Shown piece after piece: positions 4,177 to 59,524 of a stretch of DNA of 64,000 bases. Under the pieces are notes generated by a model, which was given only the letters and a program-made list of their open reading frames with translations, was not told the origin of the DNA and made no database searches. Each line of letters begins with the position of its first letter. Position 1 is the first letter of the stretch. Source of the DNA: Podarcis cretensis. Taxonomy: Eukaryota. The stretch covers positions 37,820,001-37,884,000 of the forward strand of contig OX638159.1 in the NCBI GenBank assembly GCA_951804945.1, written 5' to 3'. The translations under genes were made by a program, and so were the position numbers.

Positions 4177-4525
4177 TGTTGTGTATTGAGTCAAAGGATT
4201 TAATATCTGTATTATTATTGTCTGTATTTGCATTAGGGTAAAGTAACTGCCTTTTGGTTCCAGAGGGTACAGCTACTATTGGTTCATTTAAGCTGCTGTA
4301 TTTGGATCCTCTGTCTTATTGGTTTCCTCCAAAAGGCAGGAGTGTGATTGCCTGATATTGTTCCCTCCAAAATTTATCCTTTCTAGCTAGTTCCCTGCCC
4401 CTATAAATGTAGCTCTCCCCTCCTCAGGTCTCAGTCTTGTTGCTTTAATAAAGAAGTGTTACTAGAGAACTGTCTCCAGCATATTATGTCAAGAGAGCTG
4501 AAATCACAAACCCCACGTCACAACA
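4177..4525 (+). mobile_element. Solo LTR (about 349 bp)
   Basis: 7-bp inverted termini TGTTGTG...CACAACA; TATAAA at 4402; AATAAA at 4447. No clean TSD because the right end abuts an L2 tail. Confidence 0.65.
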
Positions 4526-4527
4526 AC

Positions 4528-5784
4528 AATAATAATAATTTATTATTTGTACCCTGCCCATCTGGCTGGGTTTCCCCAGCCACTCTGGGCGGCTTCCATA
4601 AAAATCAAAAATACACTAAAATATCACAGATTAAAAACTTCCCTGAACAGGGCTGCCTTAAGATGTCTTCTGAATGTCAGGTAGTTATTTATCGCTTTGA
4701 CATCTGATGGGAGGGCGTTCCACAGGGCAGGCGCCACTACCGAGAAGGCCCTCTGCCTGGTTCCCTGTAGCTTTGCTTCTTGCAATGAGGGAACCGCCAG
4801 AAGGCCCTCGGAGCTGGACCTCAGCGTCCGGGCAGAACGATGGGGGTGGAGACGCTCCTTCAGGTATACTGGGCCGAGGCCGTTTAGGGCTTTAAAGGTC
4901 AACACCAGCACTTTGAATTGTGCTCGGAAACGTACTGGGAGCCAATGTAGGTCTTTCAAGACCGGTGTTATGTGGTCTCGGCGGCCGCCCCCAGTCACCA
5001 GTCTAGCTGCCACATTCTGGATTAGTTGTAGTTTCCGAGTCACCTTCAAAGGTAGCCCCACGTAGAGCGCATTGCAGTAGTCCAAGCGGGAGATAACTAG
5101 AGCATGCACCACTTTGGCTAGACAGTCCGCGGGCAGGTAGAGTCTCAGCCTGCGTACCAGGTGGAGCTGGTAGACAGCTGCCCTGGATACAGAATTGACC
5201 TGCACCTCCATGGACAGCTGTGAGTCCAAAATGACTCCCAGGCTGAGCACCTGGTCCTTCAGGGGCACAGTTACCCTATTCAGGACCAGGGAGTCCTCCA
5301 CACCAGCCCGCCCCCTGTCCCCCCAAAACAGTACTTCTGTCTTGTCAGGATTCAACCTCAATCCATTAGTCGCCATCCATCCTCTAACCGCCTCCAGGGA
5401 CTCACACAGGACCTTCACCGCCTTCACTGGTTCTGATTTGAAAGAGAGGTAGAGCTGGGTATCATCTGCATATTGATGGACACCCAGTCCAAACCCCCTG
5501 ATGATCTCTCCCAGCGACTTCATATAGATGTTAAAAAGCATGGGGGAGAGGACAGAACCCTGAGGCACCCCACAAGTGAGGGCCCAGGGGTCTGAACACT
5601 CATCCCCCACCACCACTTTCTGAACACGGCCCAGGAGAAAGGAGAGAAACCACTGTATAACAGTGCCCCCAGCTACCAGCCCCTCTAGACGGTCCAGAAG
5701 GATGTTATGGTCGATTGTATCAAAGGCCGCTGAGAGATCCAGCAGAACTAGGAAACAACTCTCACCTTTGTCCCTAGCTCGCCG
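4528..5784 (-). mobile_element. L2-clade LINE, 5'-truncated, young (C-terminal half of RT plus 3' tail)
   Basis: ORF 4624-5616 has RT motifs GVPQGSVLSP and YADDTQLYLSF and the L2-type C-terminus LHWLPVRFRAQFK...WNALP. Short 3'UTR and AAT tail. Highly similar to 28681-29943. Confidence 0.93.
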
Positions 5785-5961
5785 GTTTCATTATAACACA
5801 ATGAGTGGCACCCAGTGCTGTTGTTCCACTTGTGGAATGGCTTTTAATCCAGTGGGGAAATCTGCTAACATAGGAGGAGGTGAGGCTACATCCTCTTATT
5901 TCCCCTTTCTACTACAGCCCCATTTCAGAGAGTTGGGAGATGCTCCAGAACAGCTTGGAAG

Positions 5962-6577
5962 TGTGCAGGGCCCAGAGGTAACCCGTGAAACGCGGTCCAG
6001 AATCCGAAGGTTCCGCTAGGAGTCAGTCCAACAGGGCCAAGGCAGGACACAAGGCAGGAAACCAGGCAAGGACAGGTACAGGATCTCAGGCAGGATCTAG
6101 CATACAGCAATGTTGCTCCCGCAACCTGGGGCGGGGTCCAACAGCCTTTTATCTTTGTCGGGGTAGCGTCCAGTCCTGATCCCCCCGGTGACTCACCTCC
6201 CTGTTTCGCCCGAAGGCGAGCACTCCTCCTGCGAGTACTCAGGTCTCTCCTTCTCTCAGACCTTAGTCTCTGCAGCTCGGGAGACGTCGGTGGGTTACTA
6301 GACCCAGGGGCCGCCTCAGCCTCCCCTGACCAAACCGGTAGTGGAGCAGCTGTAAGCAATGGCCCAGCTGAAGGCAATGAGGTAAACCCCATATCTGGAG
6401 CCAGGGCAGGCTCAGGCCCCTGACTCAGCCCAGCTGGTGTTTGTTGCAGGGGAACCTGTGCAGACTGGGACTCTTCAGGATCCGGCCCCAGACTTGGTTC
6501 AGGTGATGCCTGAGGCAAAGGATCCGGTGCAGACTGAGTCTCCTCTGGTTCCAAGCCCAAGTCCCAGGCCAGTGGCA
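5962..6577 (-). mobile_element. GC-rich interspersed repeat, probably LTR-like
   Basis: Sharp compositional island with TG...CA-like ends, internal short repeats (CAAGGCAGG) and a minus-strand ATAAAA near 6147-6152. TSD ambiguous (GGAAGT near both ends). Confidence 0.45.
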
Positions 6578-21111: not shown

Positions 21112-21239
21112 TCAACATCTGTTACACAAAGCATTTAAATTGAACTATTTGGGAAATACAAGTTTTACAATAATTTAAGCAAAGTTCACAGTATCACATA
21201 ATGGTCTGATGATGATGACGATGACGATAATGATTATTA

Positions 21240-21463
21240 TTAATAATTTTATTATTTATACCCCACCCATCTGGCTGGGTTTCCCCAGCCACTCTGGGTG
21301 GCTTACATATCTAAAAACATCAAGCATTAAAAACCTCCCGATACAAGGCTGCCTTAAGATGTCTTCTAAAAGTTGTATAGTTCTTTATCTCCTTGACATC
21401 TGAAGGGAGGGTGTTCCATAGGGTGGGCGCCACTATCGAGAAGGCCCTCTGCCTAGTTCCCTG
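21240..21463 (-). mobile_element. L2 LINE, short 3' fragment
   Basis: Same 3'UTR as the larger L2 copies (ATACCCCACCCATCTGGCTGGG...CAGCCACTCTGGG) plus the last ORF2 codons. Confidence 0.85.
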
Positions 21464-27393: not shown

Positions 27394-28397
27394 AACAGTA
27401 CAAAAGCCCATACTAAGTAAGAGACATAAAACTGTTATCCAAAGATGGTATTTTGGAAGGAATGTAGTTGTCTTCCACTGCAGCCAGTGTTTGGGTTCAA
27501 CAGTAGGATCAAACTCTGGTTTACTATCCTGGTTTGCAGGCCAACACAAAACATGGTTTTACCACTTCAGATGACAAAGTATAGTTTGCCCAAAATCAAT
27601 AATTACTTATTAATTACTCTGAGTATGCAAGAGGAGAGTGCATGAACCAGAGGCTCCTTCTATACAACTGACTAACCATGGCTATTTCCTTGAAGACTGC
27701 ATTAAGTGTCACATAACAAGAGTAAACAAGAAGAACAGAAATGTGGAACCCAAAGGAGGAAAGAGTGTAATTAGCCAGCCTCAGAACAAACTGATACCAT
27801 ATTCTCCAAGCCGTTTATGTCCACAGAAAATAAACTGGCATAATATACAGCATTATTCCTGGCGATCCAGGGCAAAACAAATTCTCTCCCTAAAATGCCT
27901 TTCCCAAGTGAACCTTCTATGACATTACCCTTGGAATTTTGCTTAAGCAACCTCTGCAAATTGCAGATCACAGGTTTCAGTTCATATGCAAGAGTGTGAG
28001 GCATATGTTAAGTTTTTATGAAAAGGTATTGGTCAGCATTCATCAACCTGGTGCCCTCCGGCCTTATAGGAAGCTGCTGCAGGAGAAGGACTGCAAGCAA
28101 CATCATGGGAAGGATGTTTCTAGGACTAAGGTAAAACTGTGAAGTCCCCTTGTTATTTTTGCTACTGGATCCTGCATGCCATTTAACTAATCTTGTTATA
28201 TTTATAGTACTGAAATGTGGTTTGTGAATGTTGTTATGTTTTTGTTTTGCCAGGTTATTATGATATTGTAGTTTTTGCTTGAAATGCACTCCTATTTCTT
28301 TGTTGTAATCCACTTCAAGCACGACTTTTTTGTGGAACAGCAGCATACAAATAAATGGAATGGATGAATGAATATTTTGGGATGCTACTTCTATTAG

Positions 28398-28460
28398 GTA
28401 AAGGTAAAGGACCCCTGGATGGTTAAGTCCGGTCAAAGGCGACTGTGGGGTTGTGGACAC
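28398..28460 (-). mobile_element. Sauria SINE / Bov-B-related 3' tail fragment
   Basis: GGTAAAGGTAAAGGACCCCTG...GACTGTGGGGTTG. Confidence 0.6.
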
Positions 28461-28679
28461 TCAACCTGGAGGGCATCAAGTTGGCAAATGCTGGTTTTGA
28501 ATAATCCTCCAACTTCATTCACTTCCAATATATATCTTTATCTTACCATTCTGGAAATGACACATAGTTTCCCCAAAAAAATTTAAAGAATGAAACAGTT
28601 ATTCTGCAATTTTAGTCTTACAAGTCTTCTGAGAAGACATCACTATGAATGTTTTCATAATTCAGCTGACTCCCAACAG

Positions 28680-30148
28680 TAATAATAATAATAATAATTT
28701 ATTATTTATACCCCGCCCATCTGGCTGGGCCTCCCCAGCCACTCTGGGCGGCTTCCATAGAAAGCAAAAATACAATAAAATATCACACGTTAAAAACTTC
28801 CCTGAACAGGGCTGCCTTAAGATGTCTTCTGAATGTCAGGTAGTTGTTAATCGCTTTGACATCTGCTGGAAGGGCGTTCCACAGGGCGGGCGCCACTACC
28901 GAGAAGGCCCTCTGCCTGGTTCCCTGTAGCTTTACTTCTCGCAGTGAGGGAACCGCCAGAAGGCCCTCGGCGCTAGACCTCAGCGTCCGGGCAGAATGAT
29001 GGGGGTGGAGACGCTCCTTCAGGTATACTGGACCGAGGCCGTTTAGGGCTTTAAAGGTCAGCACCAACACTTTGAATTGTGCTCGGAAACGTACTGGGAG
29101 CCAATGTAGGTCTTTCAAGACCGGTGTTATATGGTCTCGGCGGCCGCTCCCAGTCACCAGTCTAGCTGCCGCATTCTGGATTAGTTGTAGTTTCCGAGTC
29201 ACCTTCAAAGGTAGCCCCACGTAGAGTGCATTGCAGTAGTCCAAGCGGGAGATAACCAGAGCATGCACCACTCTGGCGAGACAGTCCACAGGCAGATAGG
29301 GTCTCAGCCTACGTACCAGATGGAGCTGGTAAACAGCTGCCCTGGACACAGATTTGATCTGTGCCTCCATGGACAGCTGTGAGTCCAAAATGACTCCCAG
29401 GCTGCGCACCTGGTCCTTCAGGGGCACAGTTACCCCATTCAGGACCAGGGAATTCTCCACACCTGCCCGCCTCCTGTCCCCCAAAAACAGCACTTCTGTC
29501 TTGTCAGGATTCAACCTCAATCTGTTAGCCGCCATCCATCCTCCAACCGCCTCCAGACACTCACACAGGACCTCCACCGCCTTCACTGGTTCTGATTTAA
29601 AGGAGAGGTAGAGCTGGGTATCATCCGCATACTGATGAACACCCAGCCCAAACCTCCTGATGATCTCTCCCAGCGGCTGCATGTAAATGTTGAAAAGCAT
29701 GGGGGAGAGGACAGAACCCTGAGGCACCCCACAAGTGAGAGCCCAGGGGTCTGAACACTCATCCCCCACCACCACTTTCTGAACACGGCCCAGGAGGAAG
29801 GAGCGGAACCACTGTATGACAGTGCCCCTAGCTCCCAGCCCCTCAAGACAGTCCAGAAGGATGTTATGGTCGATGGTATCAAACGCCGCTGAGAGATCCA
29901 GCAGAACTAGGAAACAGCTCTCACCTTTGTCCCTAGCCCGCCGAAGATCATCAACCAGTGCGACCAAGGCAGTTTCAGTCCCATGATGAGGCCTGAATCC
30001 CGACTGGAAGGGATCCAAATGGTCCGCTTCTTCCAGGCGTGCCTGGAGTTGTTCGGCCACCGCTCGCTAAATCACCTTGCCCAAGAATGGAAGATTTGAA
30101 ACTGGGCGATAGTTGGCCATCGTGGCCGCATCTAAAGATGGTTTTTTA
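28680..30148 (-). mobile_element. L2-clade LINE, 5'-truncated, fused at its 5' end to a PMS2 retrocopy
   Basis: Reads KKPSLDAATMANYRPVSNLPFLGKVI*RAVAEQLQ..QSGFRPHHGTETAL..LLDLSAAFDTIDH..GVPQGSVLSP..YADD..REVFNV*. One nonsense codon (TAG 30069-30067). AATAAA at 28703-28698, followed by the (ATT)n tail. Confidence 0.95.
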
Positions 30149-32122
30149 TTCTCCTGGGCTAATTTTTGCCCTGAATTTTCTGAATTTTAGTGCTGCTTCT
30201 TTCTTCTCCTCTTCCTGGCTTAGCTTCTTTACCCTGTCCATCAGTGCGCTCAGAGAAAACTCCAACGGTACAGTTTTCTTCTCCAGTTCCACAGGTATGT
30301 CGTACTGTGATAGGACTGAAGAACCCCGGTCATTCTCAGTCTTTGACGGAGTGGCCACCTGAGAAAGAGGCTGGCTCATCTTAAAACGTTTCATTTTGGG
30401 GGGTGAACTGTCTGCCTGCTGGGATAATTGGCTCTCTTTACTTTGGTTCAATTTGCATTCAGCTCCCCAGAAATCTCCCCTCGTCTCAAGACTGCCACTT
30501 TGAACTTCTCTGAAAACAGAGAAATCTTCAAGAGGTGAGCCAATTGTGTTTTCACAGCTGGAACAGCCACCATTTTCTGGCGTGCTTAAACCCACTTCCG
30601 ATTCTGCTGAGGTGCTCCCACAACCAGAATCTCTATCTTCTGCCGATTTCTTGAGTTTTTTGCCCGAAAGCATGAATGTACTTGGATCCTCCTCTCTTCC
30701 ACACTTCGCCTCTTTGCTGGAGCCAGTCTTCTTATTCGGAGAATCCAAAATGCTAAAAAATGCCGGAAGTTCTTTCTGCCCAGAGGAACTTTGTTGACGT
30801 TTGGCATTTTCAACACCATGAAAACGGGCCTTTTTCACTTGGTGGAGAGAAAATGATTCCCTAAGTTTGGCAACAGTGATTGCTGTTTTTTCTTTTGCGC
30901 TCAGATTCTGAGAGGAGGAGCCACGTGAAGTTTCCAAGGCAGGGCTTTCTGCCTCTTCTCGAAGCACTGTGAAATTTCCTTTAATATCTGGCAATGTATG
31001 GTTGACGATGAGTTTGTTAACATCACTGCCAAACATTCCCAACATTGAAGTCTTTAGAGTCGCCAATAGAAGTTTCTCTTCCTGCAACATTATTTGCCTT
31101 TTGTCAGGCGTCACATTGATGTCAACACATTCGGAATTTGCACATATATTAAGAGCCACAAACGGATACTGGTGTCTGTTGTACATGTGGTACACTTCAT
31201 TCACAACTTTGGAAACCTTGCCTGCATCACAGGGCCGCTGGTTGATAAAGAAGAACTGCCTGTCTGTGGTACTTCTCCCGACACCATGATCGCAATGGGA
31301 AACAAAGCCTGTGATAATATAAAAATTGGCTGGCATATCAGAAACATTCAGGCCGTATTCTTCACAGACAGCATCACTAGGGGGTAGCTGAATGAAAGGA
31401 ACCAAGCTCTGCACCTGCTTTGGTCCAAATATTGCTCCAATGTTTTCTTTTAAGTTTGAGCTCCCACTGGTGCACACCACAGCTTGCTTCTTCCCTTGGC
31501 CAACCTGATTGGTGCAGTTAATACGAACTCCTGTTGAAATGATACAGTATGCTTGTAACACGTGGACCATTTTTGCATACTCCTTCTTAATGTTGCGCTG
31601 AAATTCCTTATGTCGTACTGGCAAGGTATAAAATAACTGCTGCACACTGACAGTCGTCCCCTGTTGTCGTGGGCAGGGGGTCCTCAGAGTGATTTTCCCA
31701 CTGTCAAATACCAAGCGTGTGCCAACCTTTGCAGATTTGTGACAAGTAATGATGGAAACTTCACTCAATGCACACAGGGAACTCAGAGCTTCACCTCGAA
31801 AGCCAAATGTTTCAACACGTGTAAGGTCAGAAAAGTCTTGTATCTTAGAAGTATAGTGTTTCAGAGTCAAGCCTGCGAAGTTCTCTTCTTCTACACCACA
31901 ACCGTTATCAGAAACTTCAATAAGGTCTGCTCCATAATCTTTAAGTTTCACTTCAACACTGGTAGCACCGGCATCTATGCTATTTTCCACCAGTTCTTTC
32001 ACCGCAGTACACAGATTCAGCACCACCTGTCCTGAACAAATCCGATGGACAGATTTCTGGTCTATTGGTTTGATAGCTTTAGAAGGCTGGTCCCTAGGAA
32101 GAGCAAGCTCCAGATTTTGCAT
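30146..32122 (-). pseudogene. PMS2: PMS2 retrocopy (exons 2-11 joined, no introns) with an open 658-codon frame from ATG 32122; C-terminal MutL domain absent; possible retrogene
   Basis: [93 protein letters not shown] and FRAKISPGE match vertebrate PMS2. No introns, stops or frameshifts over about 1.95 kb. Stop TAA created at the L2 junction. Confidence 0.93.
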
Positions 32123-33019
32123 AGTCTTTTTAATTACTAGAGCTACTTCGTTTAAATCAATTCTAAAGGCACAAACTGGGCAATAGTAAACACACACCCC
32201 TTGCCCTTTCACAAGGAACTCTTATATCTGTCATTTTCACAGCAGGAGAACAAAACCAGCCACATCACAGATAAATAGTTCACACAAACCCCCTATTGCC
32301 AATGGTAATTTTGCTGTGTTAGGTCACTATTCTTTTTTGCTTAGCATAGGCAAATTTCCCATGCTGAACAAGTGGATCAAATTTTGCTTTCTTGTTACTA
32401 AACTCCTTTGAGCTACTGACAGCAGATATAATTATTTGCCTGAAATATACAAACAGAACCATGTTCTTTACAGATCTGAAGCTTCTATGGGGAATAAAAA
32501 GCTTAAACAACATTCTTCAGATTGCTTTACAATCTTTATCGTCAGGATTCTCAATGCCACTTACACTGCCCAAATCCTTCAGAGACAACAATGCATGCAA
32601 GTCATATTTTGTTTACATTTTAAAGTTGGGAATGAACAAGTAGACAAAGAGACTAGCTCAAGGTTACACAGAGTAGATCAGAATAAGAAGATAAATTTTC
32701 CTCACTAACTTAGTAAGCAAATACATATACTTCTGTACAGTTTGAATTTTATTTACTTATTCCGCTGTCAACATCCATGTCTTTATTTATATTTTTTGCA
32801 TAGACTTTATTTATGCATTTCAGTAATAAATACAAATAAACTGCCTTGCTCAAAGGAATACCCTATTCCTCCCTCCCACCTCCCCATTCATTCCAAGTGT
32901 ATATATAATTTACAAAGAAATTTAAGAAATCATGTGTAAGGACAATTGTAGGCATTGGGTGATACCATGTTCATTGTTTCAGCAGATTCCACCAGATTCC
33001 TATGTGCCATATATTAAAG

Positions 33020-36000
33020 GCAGTGTCCTCTTCCGCCAGTTATAAAAACAGTTAGAATCTGGCCAGAGGGCGCTTTCAGTCAGCTCCAGGATTGGCGCAT
33101 GTTTGAACATCAAGAGCTGCACAGATACACGCTGTACTTTCTTATATTAAAGTGTGCACCGATAATGTAACAACAGAGAGGTGCATTAGAGTCTATGGGA
33201 ACTGCAAACCCTGGATGACTGCTTAAGTAAGGTCACTCCTGAAAGCTCGGGATACTGCCTTCAAGGCAGGGAATATAGATATATACAGAGGGGCAAGAAC
33301 AAAGCTCAGGAAAGGCATTAAGGGGGCAAAACAACAATATAAGCTTAAGGTGGAGAATTGCCTAGCCTATAACAACACGAAACAAGTGTGGCAGGGACTG
33401 CAGCATCTAACTAACTACAACAGCAATACGAGGAACACTGTTAAGGCTGATGATTTGTTGGCAGAAGAGCTGAACATCTTCTTCGCCTGCTATGAGGTAA
33501 AAAGATCAGGTATCATAGCTCCTGCTTGCCAGCCCACAAATTCTCAGCCACTTATTCTATATGACCATCAAGTGAAAGTTGCATTGAGGGCGGTGAATCC
33601 CAGTAAAGCTGCAGGTCCAGATGGGGTGCTGGGGATAGTGCTGCCGATCAAGTAGCAGGGGTCCTGACAAGGATTTTTAACATCTCTCTGCAAACCACTT
33701 GTGTTCCATCATGTTTGAAAGCAGCCACCATTGTCCCAGTCCCAAAGAAAACAGCAACTAACTGCCTAAATGACTACAGACCTATTGCATTAATATCTGC
33801 AATGATGAAATGCTTCGAGAGATTGGTCCTTCAACACCTTAGGACATGTCTTCCACCGGATTTTAATAAACATCAGTTCGCCTATAGGAGAAACAGATGA
33901 TGCCATAGCTACAGCCTTTCACCTTGCAATGAGTCATCTGGAGAGACCGGGGAATTATGCTAGAATGTTGTTTATTGATTATAGCTCGGCTTTTAATACC
34001 ATCATTCTGGACATTCTTATAAAAAACCTGCCTGAACTAGACCTTTCTTCTACCGTCTGTGACTGGATTAAAGTCTTTCTAAGGGATCGGACACAAACAG
34101 TGAGGATTGGTCCTGTTACATCTACCTCCCTGAAGCTCAGCACTGGCACCCCACAGAGATGTGTGCTGAGTCTCTACCTGTACTCGTTGTATACATATGA
34201 CTGTATTTCATCTGATCCATCCACTGCAATTATTAAGTTTGCAGATGATACTACCACAATGGGTCTAAATACAGGTGGAGATGAATCAGCGTACAGTGGG
34301 GAGGTTCAAAAAGTATCTACATGGTGCCTAGAGAATAACTTGCACCTAAATATTAGCAAGACAAATGAGATGGTGTTGGACTTTCGGAGGAAGAGGGGAA
34401 CTAGCCCCGTTGTATATTGGGGGGGGAGTTGTGTGGAGACAGTCACTTCCTTTAAATTCCTGGGGAGTTTACCTTAGTGAAGACCTTACTTGGAAAAACA
34501 ATATAACTCAGGTGGTTAGGAAGGCCCAACAGAGACTCCATTTCCTCAGGGTCTTGTGAAAGAACAATGTTTTTTTCTTCTCAGAAAAGAAAAACCACCT
34601 CTGAAATAAATGCATTTTAAGCTTGTTGGGGGGGGGGGGACATTGTTGAATGCCTGCCACACAGGTGTTTTGTGCTTTTGAATTCTTTCTCCAATTCCTT
34701 GTTCTTATTTGCCAGATCCTGATATTGTTGCCAAAAGCAAATCGAGATTTGTAAAGATTGTATTTTTAGGGAAGTGAAAACCCGTGTCCGTAACGTAGGC
34801 TTGATCATCTCTTTCCTCCTTGGTTTCCTTTCTCTTTTTGCCAAGCCCTTCATCATTCTTTTCTTCCCGTGTGCCATAGACCAGTTTCTTTCCAGTGTTT
34901 AATATTTTGTGGAATTGATGTCAGCTTGGGTGTTGAGATAGCCGGCTGTCCACCTTGCTTCTTAGATCCTCGTAGCTCTCCAGGCCGCTCCCTCCTTGGG
35001 GGTCTTTGCCTAGCTGAAGATGTGCCCCTGAACTCTGTTTGTGCCTCTTTGCGCCCCTTGGCTTTCTCTCCCTTTGCCTCTTTGGTTTTCTTGGCCGCTG
35101 CAAGCGCCTTGGCCTCTGCCTGGGGGGCCCCTCGTCCTCAGCCCCCCGTCTTGCTTTCTTTAGACACAGCTTTCTGGCGGGCACCGGGTGTGTTTGCCAG
35201 GAAGGCCTTGGAAGAGCTCTGTTTCTTGAGGATTTGGGCCTCTTTCTCTCCCCCCCCCGGGGGGACTTCCTAGCCTTGGGCTTCGCTGGAGGTTTGCCTG
35301 GATGCTTGCTAGCTTTCGCCTTGGTACTCTTGCTGGAAGCCTCCTCCTCCTTCTCCCCTTCTGCGATTGCTCCCAGCCTCGGTTTCTCCACAGGAACCTT
35401 TGCCTTGGGATTCTTGGCCGCTTTCTTCAGTGTGGGCGCTGTTTTTCCATCCGAATCCGAATGCTTTTCCTGGCTCTTCTTTCCCTTGGCTTCCTCTGTG
35501 CCCAGCTTGAATCTCCCTGTGGCCCCCAGTGCGGAAGAGTTTTGTGGCCAGATGAGGCAGCCCCCTTTTCAGGCCTCTGGCCAGGGCCATCTTCGGGCAA
35601 ATGGGGTCCACCCCGGGGTAGCTGCTCAGGATGTAGCGCTTTATGGCCACGACAGAGACCCCCTTGTGCTCATCCAGGGTCTTCGCCTCCATCACCATGG
35701 TCATCATGGGCGGGTTGGGGCGGTTCAGGGAGGGCCGGGGGCTGCCCAGCGAGGCAGAGGACTTGGCTGCTGACAACGCCTCCATTACATGCAGCTGCTC
35801 AACTCTTCCTCCCCTTCCCACCTCGTGAAAGAACATTGTTAAACAACAATTGATGACTTCCTTCTACTGGTCCACATTAGAAAGTGTCCTCTCATATTGT
35901 ATCACAGTGGTGGAATGTTGGCTTGACAGCCACGGACAGAAAGTCTTTACAGAGGATGGTGAACACAGCACATGATATCATGGGCTGTCCCCTGAGCCCG

Positions 36001-51445: not shown

Positions 51446-54400
51446 TGAATACTTTGGCATCAGTGCACAACATTTATGCCTTACTGTGCAGACTCACAAG
51501 GTGCTAGCAGAAGAGAAGCTCAAAGCATGTGTGCCTTGTGAGGATCAGGTGTTTTTTCATGCATATTGAAAAGAGGAACTGCACAGGTAGAAAGAGCAGC
51601 CAAGAATGCTACCACTTCCCATAGTCTGGTACAAACCACAGAATTCCATTCCAAAATAAAAATAAGGCAAAAAGCAGGATGGCTTCTCTGTTGGCCCTTT
51701 TTTTAATCACAGGAGCACATAGCCATAAGGGAACCAGAACAAAACCTGTGTTTTCATTATAGCAAAGGAAATTTCATCAAACTTTTAACATCTCTGCAAA
51801 ACAAGCTACACCTACCAAATCCCCTCTTATGGACATATGCTATACTGGAGCTCTGTCCTCCTTTGCGTGTATTCAACCTGTGGAACTCTTCAGTCCAGAA
51901 GACAGCTTCAACATTTGTAAAAGGGGATTTCCCCACTAGTGTGTGCATGTAAATGAGAGGTAGCAAACATGGTGCCCTCCAGATGTTGATGGACTACAAC
52001 CAGGGTCAGCCAAAGACATTCTGACACCTGAGGTGGACTGCAAAATGTGTCAAGGAAGAAGGGATGAGGAAAGATCTATGTCAGGAACAAGGAGATGGGG
52101 CAGAGTGTTTGTACCGGGAACTGTTATCCTGGTAGATCCTGCCATCTGAGGCAGTTGCCTCACCTTGACTCATGGGTGGGCCGGCCCTGACTACAATGCT
52201 CATCAGCCACAGCCAACATGGTCAGGGGTAATGGGAGCTGTAGTCTAGCAACATCTGGAGAACACTACAGTGGCTATCCCTGATGCATATGTCCATTCTA
52301 CACACAAATGTAGAATTTGTGTAGAACAGTCCATTCTACACACAAATACAAAGATATGGAGTAAATTTGCTTACTCCTCCTCCTGACCCAATCAGCAAGT
52401 AACACAAACATTAGTTGAAAAGTGTCTTGAGAAGTTGCCAACTCCCTGGCAACTTTCCTAAGTAGGTTTAAGAGCTATGACATTAGATCAATGTTGATGC
52501 TTGTAAGAGAACACATTAATGCCAATGTTTTACTTGATATTAGTCCAATTTCCTCCACTGGGGATTAAAATGTATGCTATGTCAAACAGCTCTTCCTAAA
52601 ATTTCTCTGTACAACAATGTTATTTATTCTACCCTTTTCCTTCCCAACACTACTAGCCTGTTAAAAAAGTCTACAAAACAAAAACAGCCACAGTAATAGT
52701 AAGCAATAAAAAGTTACTAATAAGCATCGTCCATCACTACATTTCTTGAAGTGATTAGATTTCATGTTTGTTTATTTGTTTTTAACTCCACATAACAACA
52801 GACCACTGTACAACTTTAATAAAATCCCCAATAAACCAGGTCTACTCCATTCAATGCATGTTGCTTTGGTACACAAAAGCTAAATGCAGAGCCAATGAGC
52901 AGGTGAAGGACTGCATCCCACACTTAAGCCTGCAACTCAATGCTCTTACTCCCAAGTAAGAGTGCACTGCATTGCTTACTTAGTGTGCATTAGACTGCAT
53001 CCTTCAGTCTTAATTTGACAGGACTTATTTTGAGTAAGCAGGCACTGACTCAGAATTCAAAAGAAAAATAAAACTGCAGAAGATGGAACAGATAAAAGTA
53101 TTGCTCGTTTTGCAGTTCTCTGATTTGTCTTGTGTACTACACTGCTTTCCTAAAACCAGGTTTCTAAGCCAACACTCTTCCTGAAATAATTACACATTTT
53201 ATTACGCTTCTATGCAAATAGTTACTGCACTTTCCTTACACTAGTAATAACTATACCACAAAACAGGAGATTGATGGGAAGCAACTAATCCAAATGTTAA
53301 CAATGTAATTCAAGAGGCTCCATACCTTTATGCAAGCAAGTTAAATTAGTGGAACCACCATCTGACCTGTGTTTGTTTTGCACGTCGCCATCATAACAGT
53401 TCCCATAAAAATGCAACAGGAACAAGAGAATCAGTTTGGAGAAGCACAGCTACTTGTAAAAATCCCCCTCCCATTATGATGTATGCAGGCAAGAGAGCCG
53501 AAAAGAATGCAAGAGTTCTCTGGCACACACATAGGGTGATCAGTATTGCAGAAAGCGCTTCACTCCCAACAAGGGGTGCATGTGAGAAAAGCTAACGGCT
53601 CCCTCCCAGCGACCCAACCATTAAGGGTCTCTGGAACGAACAATGCATTCACTCCGGCTTTCATTTTCCACACTGGAAAGCCACAGCAGGCGGCAGAGCA
53701 ATAAAACGACTGGCAGATTTATCTGCCTGCTTGGTCGGCTGCGGAGACAGATGGGAGGGAAAGGGGCTTAGGCGGCAGCAGCAGCAACAAACCCGGAGTG
53801 TTCCAGTGCAGTCAGGGCGCAGTCTCGAGGTTTGCTCCAGGCTCCGCAGCTCAGCTACAAGGCCGTAGATGTAGCATCTGCAAAGTTTTGTGCTCTCTGG
53901 GTTCTTCTCCCCCAGTAGTGATCTGACCAGTTCCAGTGCTAGAGGCTAAAGTGGATTTGGCGCTGTGTGTGTTTAGACGCGCACGTTCCCCTCGTGGTAG
54001 GACAGAAACCCTTTTGATCGCCCGCTGCTAAACCTGTTTGTGGGATCCCAGCTTTTCTCTGCAGCTGTTTCCAGGACGCTCCTCCACAGCAGATCCTCAC
54101 TGCCTTTTTTTCTCCCACACCCACACGGTCAGACACCGAAATAACCCGGAAGGCTGCTGGGATTTGGAACGAAGAAGCTGGAAGTTTGAAGACTGCCAGC
54201 CGAAGCGTACTTACTTTAAAGCAAAACCCACCGAAATCACTGGAATGGGCTCCCCCAGTTTTGTTTCGCTAAAGAGGAGAGGGTCGTTCTCGCCTGAGCC
54301 CCTGGCCAGCAAGGCGCGCGCGAACACGCCAAGGCACACACTTTTCCACACTCAGTTTTCAGGCACGTAGGAAGAGCGGAGCTCCCCCCCCCCCCATGGC

Positions 54401-54607
54401 GAGACACGGTCGTCGTGACCCCCCCCCCCCGGTCACTTTATTTTCCTCACATCCAAAGTTGATAAGCACATGGAGGGAAGTTTGCTCCGCAAAAGCCGCC
54501 ACCATTCCCAGCGCCTCCCTGGCCGGCCAGCCTCTCTCCCTCTCTCTCCCCGCGCAAATCCAATGAATGGAAAGGAAATCCCCTCACGGTCTTCCCCTCG
54601 GACTTAC

Positions 54608-54960
54608 CCGACGTCCAAGGGTGCAACTTCGCCGCAGCCGCCTCGCGGGTTTCCCCCGGCTGGTAAATCCCCGGTGCCCGGCAAGAAGCGGCCGTGAGCG
54701 CGCTCGCGCTTGGCGTCTCCGCCACCTCAGCCTCTCTCCGGCCACCTCAGCGCGGGCGTCCCCCTCCGTCCTCCCTCCCCTCCGCAGGCCTCAGCGCGGC
54801 CAGTCCAGGAGGAGCGGAGGGACCTCGCCTGCTCGGCAGCTTCCCGCGGGAGGGAAGAAGGAGCGGTGTGGAGCGAGGCTGCCTCCTCGCTCGGTCCTGC
54901 CCTGGACCAGCCCACTCGACACGGCCGTCCCCCACCAACGTCTGCCTTCCTCTTCTCTCT
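54608..54960 (-). other. Likely non-coding first exon of an unidentified minus-strand gene
   Basis: Consensus donor CGG|GTAAGT (54607-54602) at the edge of the CpG-densest block. No ATG-initiated ORF runs to the donor. Transcription start approximate. Confidence 0.6.
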
Positions 54961-55484
54961 CCTCCCAAGCCGATGGATTAAAAGGGGGGACGAGGCCGGC
55001 GGCGGAGGAGGAAGGGAGAGTGTTGGAGAGCGATTGGGGCGCCCTGAGGAGAAGCCGCCAGCGATTGCGAGACGAGGACTGTCCCTCACGAAAGGGGAAA
55101 GGAGGGAGGGAAGGGCGGGATGCGGGGCCCAAGGCAACGTACGAGGAGGGGGGTATGGGGTCGAGGGACAAAAAGGAGGAGCACACGGGGAACAAGTGTC
55201 AAGGTAGTTTTCCTCTGTTGGATGGGAATATTATATTCATGTACACACATTCACACACTTTGGCGCACAGCAAGAGAGCCGGCAAGAATTGCGAAGCTCG
55301 AAGAAGACCCGAGGGGACAGCGGTGGGGGCGCCCCATGACTTCTTGTCGTGGGGTCAGGGAGCTAGGTTCCTGAGGTAAAATGTGAGACTTCGTGAGAGG
55401 GGGAAAGTGGGCGCAAGTTTGAAATCTGATGGGTGATACGCGCAGCTTCGCTTCTCCCCGAGACATGGAAGTGTTCCTTTCATC

Positions 55485-55620
55485 CAGTGGCGTAGCGTGG
55501 GGGGTGCAGGGGGGGCCGGCCGCACCAGGCGCAACATCTGGGGTTAGGGCAAATCCACGGGTTAGGGGGCGCAAATTACTTGCCTTGCCCCGGGTGCTGA
55601 CAACCCACGCTACGCCACTG
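55485..55620. mobile_element. hAT-type MITE (136 bp), young
   Basis: Perfect 17-bp TIR CAGTGGCGTAGCGTGGG / CCCACGCTACGCCACTG; perfect 8-bp TSD CTTTCATC at 55477-55484 and 55621-55628. Confidence 0.93.
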
Positions 55621-57021
55621 CTTTCATCTGTTTGTCACGACGTTGTAAAAAAGGAAAACGAGGATGGAAAACCTTTCAAGGGAAAAATATACACATGCCT
55701 GCTGTCTGTACAGATGTTTGTGTGTGGTGTACAGAAAGAGGCAAAAACGATAGGAGTGCGTGAGGTAACGGGGAAGGTATCTTTCTGAGGGAGATTTCGT
55801 CAGGTGGTGTAAAAAGATCAGGGGGCAGGATGAGGGCAGATGTAAGGCATCGAGGTCCCTGCGGGAATATACGTGTGAAATGCCTTCCCACGTGAAAGCG
55901 GAACAGCCCATCCGAGGAGAGACCGCGCCAGGCTCCTGACTCGGAGCGGCGAAGCGCAGGGTTTGGTCAGCAGCGAGGCTGCTGCGAGCCAAGGCAGAGC
56001 GTCCCAAGAGGCGGGGGACGAGGTCAGCGGCTGTGTGTGTTGATAGGAGGGAGGCCCCACGGCTCCCAGCAGCGGGCGGGGCGGAGTGAGCGTGGCAGAC
56101 ACAATAAAGGGTTCATGCATGGAGCAAGGCTGGGGCGGGCGGGAGGAAGAAAGGCCCGCGTGCCGCGGGGGATACGGAACTCCCCGTCTCTGCTGCTCAT
56201 TACGAGGGAGGGACGGAGAGGGGACAGCAAGGCCGACGAAGCAAACGGTCGCGGCGAAGCTGGCCTCGGGGGAAACCCAGCACTGGGCAGGAGAAGAGGC
56301 GAGGGAGTTCCCGCCAAGCCCAGCTACTTTTTGGCGCGCGCGCTCTCTCGCTCGCTCGCTCTCCCTCCCTGCTTGATGTGTGTGAGTGAGTGAGAGAGAG
56401 AGAGAGACTTTAATGGTACTACTAGCTTGGTGCCTCCCTGCCGAAGACGCTGCCAAAAGCACCAAACGGAAACCGAGTGCAGTGCTGAGCAGCAGTCGTG
56501 TCCCTGGGATAGAAAGGGAATTATTGGACACCCTCCTCGCCTGTCTCAGAGGGAAAGAGGGAAAGGAAGACAGCAAACAAAGCAGGAGATTGCGCTTCAA
56601 AGGAAGAGGAAAAAATATAACACAGCACTGTGTTCAGCACTGTGTATACATTGTGCGCTATGATCCTGTTGGTGGTTTGCTGTTGTGCCCTGATAAGTCT
56701 CAGTATTTTATGGATTATTAAGAAAAAGACACCTGTTGAGCAAATAAATTGAAACTTGGCATACCCAATGAGGCCTACAAATGTGGCAGAACTGGTCCTA
56801 TATTTTATTTATGTAAGAATTTACATACTGCTTGATTGTAAAACACACAAACACAAAATTCTAAGCAGTTTACGATTATTCTAAGTGGTTTAAAACAATA
56901 AACATCGCCTGTAACAGTGCCACATAAGAAGTGCTGGAAATGGACACATTTACTTTTTTCAGTTTTGAAAAGGAGTATCATATACCAGTATTTCTTTCCA
57001 ATTTTGGTGGAAAATGATGTA

Positions 57022-58518: not shown

Positions 58519-58929
58519 ATTATTATTATTATTATTTATTTTATACCCCGCCCATCTGGCTGGGTTTTCCCAGCCAATCTGGGCGGCTTCCAACCGAATA
58601 TTGAAAACAATACAGTATCAGACATTAAAAACTTCCCTAAACAGGGCCACCTTCAGTTGTCTTTTAAAAGTAAAATAGTTGTTTATTGCCTTGACATCTG
58701 CTGGGAGGGCGTTCCACAGGGCAGGCGCCACTACCGAGAAGGCCCTCTGCCTGGTTCCCTGTAACTTGGCTTCTCACGGTGAGGGAACCACCAGAAGGCC
58801 CTCGGCACTGGACCTCAGTGTTCGACCTGGATGATGGAGGTGGAGACGCTCCTTCAGGTATACAGGACCAAGGGCGTTTAGGGCTTTAAAGGTGAATACC
58901 AACACTTTGAATTGTGCTCAGAAATGTAC
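58519..58929 (-). mobile_element. L2 LINE 3' fragment
   Basis: Same 3'UTR and ORF2 end as the other L2 copies; more diverged. Confidence 0.88.
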
Positions 58930-59524
58930 TTTATCTCTTTCTGCGCATTTAGATGTGGCAGTCAATTCCTGATGTGCAGCCACATAGCAGTTGTTTTGTG
59001 GCTGGTGCCCATGACAATTTCTAAAAGTTTCAAAAATGCCCATTGACCCCAACCTATAAATGCTTCCTGCAAATAACACATTATTTCTGTCCACGGATTG
59101 AACAAATAATAGCAATTTAGTTGATAATTGACACAAATTGTCTTTTGTCTATAGCTACATGTTTCAGGTGCATGGAAGTGACTTCCATGTGCAAAGAAAT
59201 TATCTGTTTTGTATTTGATGTTGATGTTAACCTGCTGGTACCTAGATAAAAATTGTCTACAAAATAATGTTTTTACGTGCATCTTGTTCTAAAATGCACT
59301 TATAGTTAAATAAACTGAGTATAACACATGACAGCCTGCCTAGATAGTTCCCACTTTTTATTTCTATAATAAAAACAAGTCCCTGGATGGGTAATTGGAC
59401 AATGCACCATGACTCTCAGCTAAAGACCTGACACATCATGTACATGTGCATTTCCCCAACATGTATAGAAAAGGACATGCAGTAGCAACATTTTTTGGTT
59501 ATATCTATATTGAACTATTGTTAC

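Follow-up and report, generated by a model that had tools for sequence, protein, structure and literature searches.

On its minus strand, a 64,000-nucleotide stretch of Podarcis cretensis DNA (contig OX638159.1, positions 37,820,001 to 37,884,000, hereafter the window) carries an intron-free copy of the mismatch-repair gene PMS2 (32112-30149) joined straight to a 5′-truncated long interspersed element (LINE) of the L2 type (30148-28680), with neither spacer nor poly(A) between the two. The spliced PMS2 part measures 1964 nt and is followed by 1469 nt of L2 3′ end, which consists of the reverse-transcriptase (RT) half of the second open reading frame (ORF2), a hairpin in the 3′ untranslated region (3′UTR) and an (ATT)6 tail, for a whole insert of 3.4 kb. 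An earlier note, made from the letters of the window alone, had described a PMS2-L2 chimera with both parts in the same orientation and nothing between them, and this is confirmed by the sequence, by Pfam matches and by protein alignments. The features of the locus are listed below, each with the evidence that defines it.

28677-28679, minus strand: 3′ copy of a putative CTG target-site duplication (inferred from a count of seven letters in the empty site)
28680-28698, minus strand: (ATT)6 microsatellite tail of L2, (TAA/ATT)6.3 (repeat search)
28699-28782, minus strand: L2 3′UTR with a predicted hairpin of ~15 bp (28713-28751) and AATAAA (structure prediction)
28783-30148, minus strand: 5′-truncated L2 ORF2, KKPSLD.. 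to stop, with RT domain (open reading frame, Pfam, protein relatives)
30141-30149, minus strand: PMS2/L2 breakpoint (loose ends of L2 copies, parental residues, tblastn, pairing statistic)
30149-32112, minus strand: PMS2-derived cDNA from the TG of codon 1 to codon 656, without 5′UTR and 3′-truncated (protein alignment, contigs)
30149-30980, minus strand: exon 11 part of the copy (matches of the parental exon 11 contig of the holder species)
30146-32122, minus strand: open frame of 658 codons, from an ATG in the flank to a TAA made by the joint (sequence, list of open reading frames, protein alignment)
32094-32112, minus strand: exon 1 coding remnant of 19 nt, spliced to exon 2 (alignment from residue 1; in organisms B and E, exon 2 matches as far as ~32095)
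32111-32113, minus strand: 5′ copy of the putative CTG target-site duplication (contigs of B and E align to 32111, an mRNA contig of organism F to 32112)

The two parts of the chimera

The minus-strand open reading frame at 30146-32212 contains the Pfam domains HATPase_c_3 and DNA_mis_repair, which are those of the N-terminal half of MutL/PMS2, and its best relatives are lacertid PMS2 proteins. The copy aligns uninterrupted to residues 1-656 of the 862-residue lacertid PMS2, with protein identities of 96.5% to Podarcis muralis and P. raffonei, 95.9% to P. lilfordi, 94.1% to Zootoca and 92.7% to Lacerta agilis. Its 5′ end is the TG of the PMS2 start codon (32112): the lacertid protein starts MELALPRDQ, and the window reads ..CTG GAG CTT GCT CTT CCT AGG GAC CAG.. 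at this point. The earlier note had recognised spliced exons 2-11; the intron-free copy does reach exon 11, but exon 1 is included too, with 19 nt, so that the copy starts at 32112 and not at 32093. The letters ttcctag, considered as a splice acceptor of intron 1 at which the copy might begin, were rejected in this role, as they encode Leu-Pro-Arg of MELALPRDQ in exon 1 coding sequence joined to exon 2. At its other end the copy stops at residue 656 (..KISPGE), within exon 11. Here the parental protein runs on as NKTAEDELRKEI, and the window instead has TAA after GAA. No match to PMS2 residues 660-862 (exons 12-15) was found in the 64-kb window by tblastn with full-length PMS2, in agreement with what the note had stated. 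Poly(A) is absent from the mRNA part, the inner joint and the end of the element; the mRNA part stops in exon 11 and L2 comes next.

The L2-type ORF2 frame starts one base after the TAA, with KKPSLDAATMANYRPVSNLPFLGKVI, contains an RVT_1 domain (Pfam) and shows 96% identity to RT proteins of P. muralis. Longer relatives of this ORF2 read ..VIKPLLKKPSLDAATMANYRP (..KPLL followed by KKPSLD), and from this continuation the L2 part is therefore truncated inside ORF2, between LL and KK. The frame has one in-frame TAG at 30067-30069 and its stop codon at 28783-28785. Beyond it the insertion ends in the L2 3′UTR and the (ATT)n tail, as the note had also claimed. The 3′UTR hairpin is predicted alike in three copies of the family in the window, with no covariation among them, and an Rfam scan of 28600-28900 (E up to 10) returned chance matches only, with neither a stem-loop like that of eel UnaL2 nor another LINE 3′ element among them. 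By these features, the element is confirmed as an RT-bearing LINE that ends in a hairpin and a microsatellite in place of poly(A); 'L2' is used here as a label only, and the database names of its relatives are generic.

Further copies of this L2 family lie elsewhere in the window. The copy at 4522-5784 (minus strand) is 93% identical to that of the chimera, is 5′-truncated at ~5784 and carries an (ATT)n(GTT)n tail, being an ordinary truncated insertion; it is truncated before the breakpoint position and hence offers no L2 sequence 5′ of the joint. Older fragments at 58519-58930 and 21235-21463 show 85% and 79% identity, respectively, to the 3′ end. A reverse-transcriptase reading-frame fragment at 33929-34474 (plus strand; RVT_1, E 6e-15), ~1.8 kb from the chimera and on the opposite strand, belongs to a different LINE copy.

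Splicing and the parental gene

One sequencing run each of organisms A (the holder species), B, E and F was mapped onto 28300-32500. The share of sampled window words amounted to 0.86-0.92 in organism A (three samples), 0.59-0.72 in B to E, and 0.40-0.42 in the RNA-sized F and G. In the related species B and E, the segments 30141-30980, 30978-31132, 31413-31584, 31582-31765 and 31954-32095 are found as separate contig pieces with unlike flanking sequence, and the first two of them sit 864 nt apart within one contig of B. Such separate, unlike-flanked pieces represent the parental exons, and the window copy is therefore spliced. A contig of the holder species (X1 record 3) matches 30141-30980 with 2 other letters and then continues for 418 nt unlike the window, and it represents parental exon 11 followed by intron 11 of that species. 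The residues required of the parent at the place where the window reads TAAAAAAC are Asn-Lys-Thr; both mismatches would accordingly fall within 30141-30148, which would leave 832 identical nt; the contig letters at the parental breakpoint are derived here from the protein residues together with the contig mismatch counts.

The PMS2 part is thus colinear with the mRNA and intron-free, it occupies a non-parental site whose orthologue is empty (see below), and parental exon 11 is present on a contig of its own; the poly(A) tail that is the hallmark of an L1-type processed copy is missing. The RNA contigs of organism F represent its own parental PMS2 mRNA only (23 differences in 525 nt of exon 11, and no coverage of the flanks). 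One of them matches the window from its letter 63 at 32112, and its 62-nt leader, taken as 5′UTR, is absent from the copy.

A His codon at 31702 (after FD in ..RLVFD-SGK..) is missing from all X1 contigs, in the parental gene and the copy alike, and is present in B, E and F as well as in every lacertid PMS2 protein of the database. This is a species-specific in-frame deletion in the PMS2 ATPase domain. As the copy shares it with all X1 contigs, the copy carries the allele of its own species.

The breakpoint

PMS2 sequence ends at 30149 and L2 sequence takes over at 30148, with no bases shared across the joint. The chimera reads CCAGGAGAA followed by TAAAAAACCATC, the parent CCAGGAGAA followed by AAYAAAAC, and L2 ..CCGCTTCT followed by TAAAAAACC. 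L2 copies that extend further 5′ leave the window sequence exactly behind 30148, ending in ..CCGCTTCT and then T, and the 5′ L2 consensus, written in the L2 sense, has ..AAACCGCTTCT before TAAAAAACC (agreement 0.95 in B) and translates into KPLL followed by KK. On the PMS2 side, the residues that come after the breakpoint in the lacertid protein are NKT, and we infer the two wobble bases of the parent at this point.

Over the 8 bases 3′ of the joint, the L2 sequence TAAAAAAC is kept whereas the parental AAYAAAAC is replaced. Six of these eight bases agree in register, including AAAAC, and an agreement of at least 6/8 is reached in 0.47% of 2.8 million PMS2-L2 position pairings. It is due to this similarity that the tblastn alignment runs on to 30140 and the parental contigs to 30141. 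The earlier note had envisaged a switch at an A-rich microhomology; an A-rich, in-register similarity does lie just 3′ of the joint, but the exact microhomology at the joint itself is 0 nt.

The donor side begins with AA (of the Asn codon) and not GT, and the acceptor side is preceded by CT and not AG. The joint is therefore not a splice product, which bears out the note's view of a junction inside an exon, here at residue 656 in exon 11. Cryptic splicing from exon 11 to an L2 in the following intron was also considered and rejected, since GT/AG signals are lacking and the first ~380 nt of intron 11 in the holder species contain no L2.

The empty site and the age of the two halves

Single contigs of B (X5 record 25) and E (X11 record 10) cover both 28427-28669 and 32111-32500, with 7 letters between the two pieces; the left piece ends at 28669 because 28670-28710 was masked in mapping. 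The PMS2 and L2 parts are thus absent together from B and E, and the flanks are otherwise intact, which is the outcome of a comparison of the orthologous site that the earlier note had proposed. The 7 intervening letters are exactly the length of 28670-28676. From this letter count, the empty site would carry one CTG, and the CTG at 32113-32111 and that at 28679-28677 of the filled site would constitute a 3-bp target-site duplication. Searches for a direct repeat of at least 10 nt with at most 1 mismatch between the flanks found none, which leaves the 3-bp CTG as the one duplication compatible with the empty site. Its copy at 32113-32111 shares its TG with the PMS2 start codon, so that target and cDNA overlap by 2 nt. 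The reading of this CTG as a mutated ATG was rejected, as the C at 32113 belongs to the flank as aligned in the empty-site contigs. Both the 5′ outer junction and the joint of exons 1 and 2 are bridged by a holder-species contig (X1 record 8, 1113 nt), which extends from beyond 32500 across 32110 to 31954. Within the flank, at position 28613, B and E have 13 extra letters that are absent from the holder species.

Over the PMS2 part, X1 is represented by short, exon-sized contigs with 0 other letters relative to the window. Word depth in X1 is 19-27 over the PMS2 part versus 13-14.5 over the flanks, and this higher depth is what collapsed parent-plus-copy sequence would give. At a threshold of 10%, at most 5 variable places occur in 4.2 kb of X1, and the one displayed (30058) lies in L2; the limit of at most 5 holds for the L2 part despite the hundreds of thousands of L2 words mapped there. 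Both halves are therefore very young, and an age difference between them is not visible. The earlier note had also proposed comparing the divergence of the two parts, and in this comparison they come out as equally and extremely young.

Origin of the chimera

We consider it very probable that the PMS2-L2 chimera was inserted as a whole, in the holder lineage only, by a single event of L2-type target-primed reverse transcription. The signature of a single event is provided by the L2 tail at one end and the cDNA 5′ end at the TG/CTG overlap at the other, by the 3-bp repeat and by the empty site in the relatives. As expected of a template-switch chimera, the two parts share one orientation without a spacer, lie jointly inside one putative CTG duplication and meet at a non-splice joint. 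As the tail is (ATT)n and not poly(A), the L1-type poly(A) route is not indicated. Within a single event of this kind, the fewest assumptions are needed by a template switch that took the enzyme from L2 RNA onto PMS2 mRNA, and we regard this route as the probable one. In this scenario the L2 reverse transcriptase would start on the (ATT)n tail of L2 RNA at the target nick and copy 1.47 kb. In the A-rich ORF2 stretch TAAAAAACC, the nascent cDNA end would re-anneal to the similar AAYAAAAC of the PMS2 mRNA; the in-register similarity fits such an end, fresh from L2 RNA, pairing with a like stretch of another RNA. Synthesis would continue along the PMS2 mRNA up to the start codon, and the cDNA end would be joined to the upstream target end at the TG/CTG overlap. 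Of the sequence of events in the earlier note, in which an L2 integration by target-primed reverse transcription switches to PMS2 RNA, the single L2-type integration of the chimera stands, whereas the switch itself is the probable course, with a fusion RNA predicting the same product.

Several points weigh against this account. There is no exact microhomology at the joint, and the terminal cDNA base would be mismatched on the PMS2 RNA. The in-frame TAG of the L2 part means that the template RNA may have come from a defective copy served in trans. Among the matches listed, no contig bridges the inner joint 30149/30148, which rests on the assembly, and X1 may be the same sample as the window assembly. 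The CTG duplication, in turn, comes from a count of letters and not from read letters of the empty site. A template switch and the retrotransposition of an RNA that was already fused predict products that are identical.

Such a fusion RNA could have arisen from a 5′-truncated L2 in exon 11 of one PMS2 allele, or from ligated RNAs, and the spliced transcript would then have been retrotransposed via its L2 3′ end. A single insertion with a short duplication, an empty site in relatives and two young halves would all result, the chimera does carry the L2 3′ tail at which L2-type enzymes initiate, and joining of DNA through microhomology would likewise be expected to leave similarity at the 5′ junction of a LINE. 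This origin nevertheless calls for two rare germline events, and a null allele of a mismatch-repair gene would have to be rare or to have been lost. In the holder species, exon 11 is intact on its contig (X1 record 3), which continues into unlike sequence and not into L2, and plain RNA ligation would not predict the in-register similarity of 6/8. We hold a pre-formed fusion RNA, the chief rival of the template switch, to be unlikely. Another possibility is that end-joining captured a free PMS2 cDNA fragment as filler at a 5′-truncated L2 insertion, which would yield the same outer structure and accord with an inner joint that lacks exact microhomology. This would require a separate 2-kb PMS2 cDNA, whose synthesis began within exon 11 from an unspecified primer, and would leave both the same-sense orientation and the in-register similarity unexplained; it is very unlikely on these grounds.

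The alternative, named in the earlier note, that L2 inserted into an older retrocopy is strongly argued against by the joint absence of both parts in the relatives and by their equal youth. A version confined to the holder lineage, in which a PMS2 retrocopy later received an L2 insertion that removed the 3′ part of the retrocopy, draws on the ability of LINE insertions to delete target DNA, and B and E say nothing on the order of events inside that lineage. The flanks, however, are contiguous in the empty site, with room for a 3-bp repeat only, and the deletion would have to have removed exactly the remainder of the retrocopy, its tail and its duplication; neither poly(A) nor a second duplication is present, and with 0 differences between the PMS2 part and the parent there was almost no time for a second event. 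Two successive insertions are thus highly improbable. An assembly artefact, in which a PMS2 retrocopy was mis-joined to an unrelated L2, is scarcely credible: although none of the matches listed spans the inner joint, the PMS2 start and the L2 tail each border a flank, and the two flanks lie side by side in two other species, so that an insert with a PMS2 head and an L2 tail is required regardless, and the organism A runs from three samples hold the high share of sampled words given above (0.86-0.92). Template switching within one L2-type integration remains the reading that we prefer.

Coding potential, wider meaning and other features of the window

The 658-codon frame has MQNL in place of M, as its ATG is supplied by the flank, and its TAA stop is formed at the PMS2/L2 joint. 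As judged from the domains present, it would encode a putative PMS2 without the C-terminal dimerisation/endonuclease domain. If transcribed, this frame, with the PMS2 ATPase domain and without the MLH1-binding/endonuclease domain, could act as a truncated mismatch-repair protein. Because the copy is confined to one species and has 0 differences from the parental contigs, it offers no substitutions for a selection test on the frame.

The locus suggests that a LINE thought to copy its own RNA only can still duplicate a host gene, by starting on its own tail and continuing on a host mRNA. The example is clean, with no difference from the mapped parental exon contigs, a site that is empty in two sister species and a breakpoint defined to the base. 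A more far-reaching and speculative view, to which we attach low confidence, is that squamate genes are regularly retroposed through template switching by L2/CR1-type elements, a route overlooked so far, of which the present chimera would be the freshest case; that the chimera might be mobilised again by L2, because it keeps an intact L2 3′ hairpin and tail; and that its frame might serve as a truncated protein.

Gene models of Podarcis muralis and Varanus komodoensis (P0135, P0136, P0158, P0161, P0164, P0167) combine such a LINE RT with host domains, namely MHC class I, harmonin, nucleotide-sugar transporter, CUB and ERI1 exonuclease. These are probably for the most part annotation run-ons through intronic LINEs, and a few could be further mRNA-LINE chimeras.

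Two other regions of the window were noted. The block at 54000-56600 is G+C-rich (0.59) and has long open reading frames on both strands without a Pfam match, and may be a CpG island or a GC-rich repeat. At 5925-6560 (minus strand), a 211-codon open reading frame, also without a Pfam match, lies in G+C-rich sequence immediately 5′ to the truncated L2 copy.

Comparison with known systems

Chimeras of a 5′ cellular RNA and a 3′ LINE are established for mammalian L1 and for the fungal element MGL (PMC2104539, PMC4476161, bioRxiv 10.1101/2025.02.02.635956). Like the U6/L1 and mRNA/L1 chimeras, the PMS2-L2 chimera has a 5′ copy of a cellular RNA in sense with a 5′-truncated LINE 3′ part, one target-site duplication and no inner poly(A). 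It differs from the L1 chimeras in that its LINE is not L1 and has (ATT)n and a 3′UTR hairpin instead of poly(A), and from U6/L1 in that the partner is a 2-kb spliced coding mRNA and not a small RNA. A survey of L1 from 2025 makes no mention of LINE-2, CR1, reptiles or lizards (bioRxiv 10.1101/2025.02.02.635956). The MGL element of Magnaporthe grisea likewise forms template-jump chimeras with a LINE other than L1 (PMC2104539). There the element is fungal and the partners are non-coding RNAs, whereas here the element is a vertebrate L2-type LINE, the partner is a protein-coding mRNA, and the empty site is available in sister species.

Retrocopies flanked by long terminal repeats (LTRs), which arise from microsimilarity-dependent template switches, are found in many animals (Tan et al. 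2016, PMC5131818). They resemble the present case in that a partial mRNA copy is joined to a retroelement at short similar stretches, and they offer a retrocopy route in animals without L1 dominance. However, they have an LTR on both sides and involve virus-like particles and two switches, as opposed to the one switch proposed here, a LINE 3′ end only and target-primed reverse transcription.

According to reviews, cellular mRNAs are seldom copied by LINEs, CR1 among them, that recognise the 3′ end of their own RNA (PMC5470649, PMC3747384), and the literature searched, the coverage of which was partial, yielded no description of an L2-type LINE fused to an mRNA copy. Short interspersed elements (SINEs) with LINE-derived tails, and the 'stringent' LINE model of eel UnaL2 (PMC3747384), offer a parallel in that a LINE 3′ tail recognised by the LINE enzyme carries a head of foreign RNA; a tail of this kind should leave the chimera open to mobilisation. 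The head of the present chimera is an mRNA and not a tRNA or 5S promoter, so that it lacks an internal promoter, and the chimera is a single copy and not a family. The birth of LINE-tailed SINEs is usually explained by the same kind of template switch, and the chemistry is one that specialists would expect. The PMS2-L2 chimera mirrors the event that is assumed to create such SINEs, with a host mRNA as the head.

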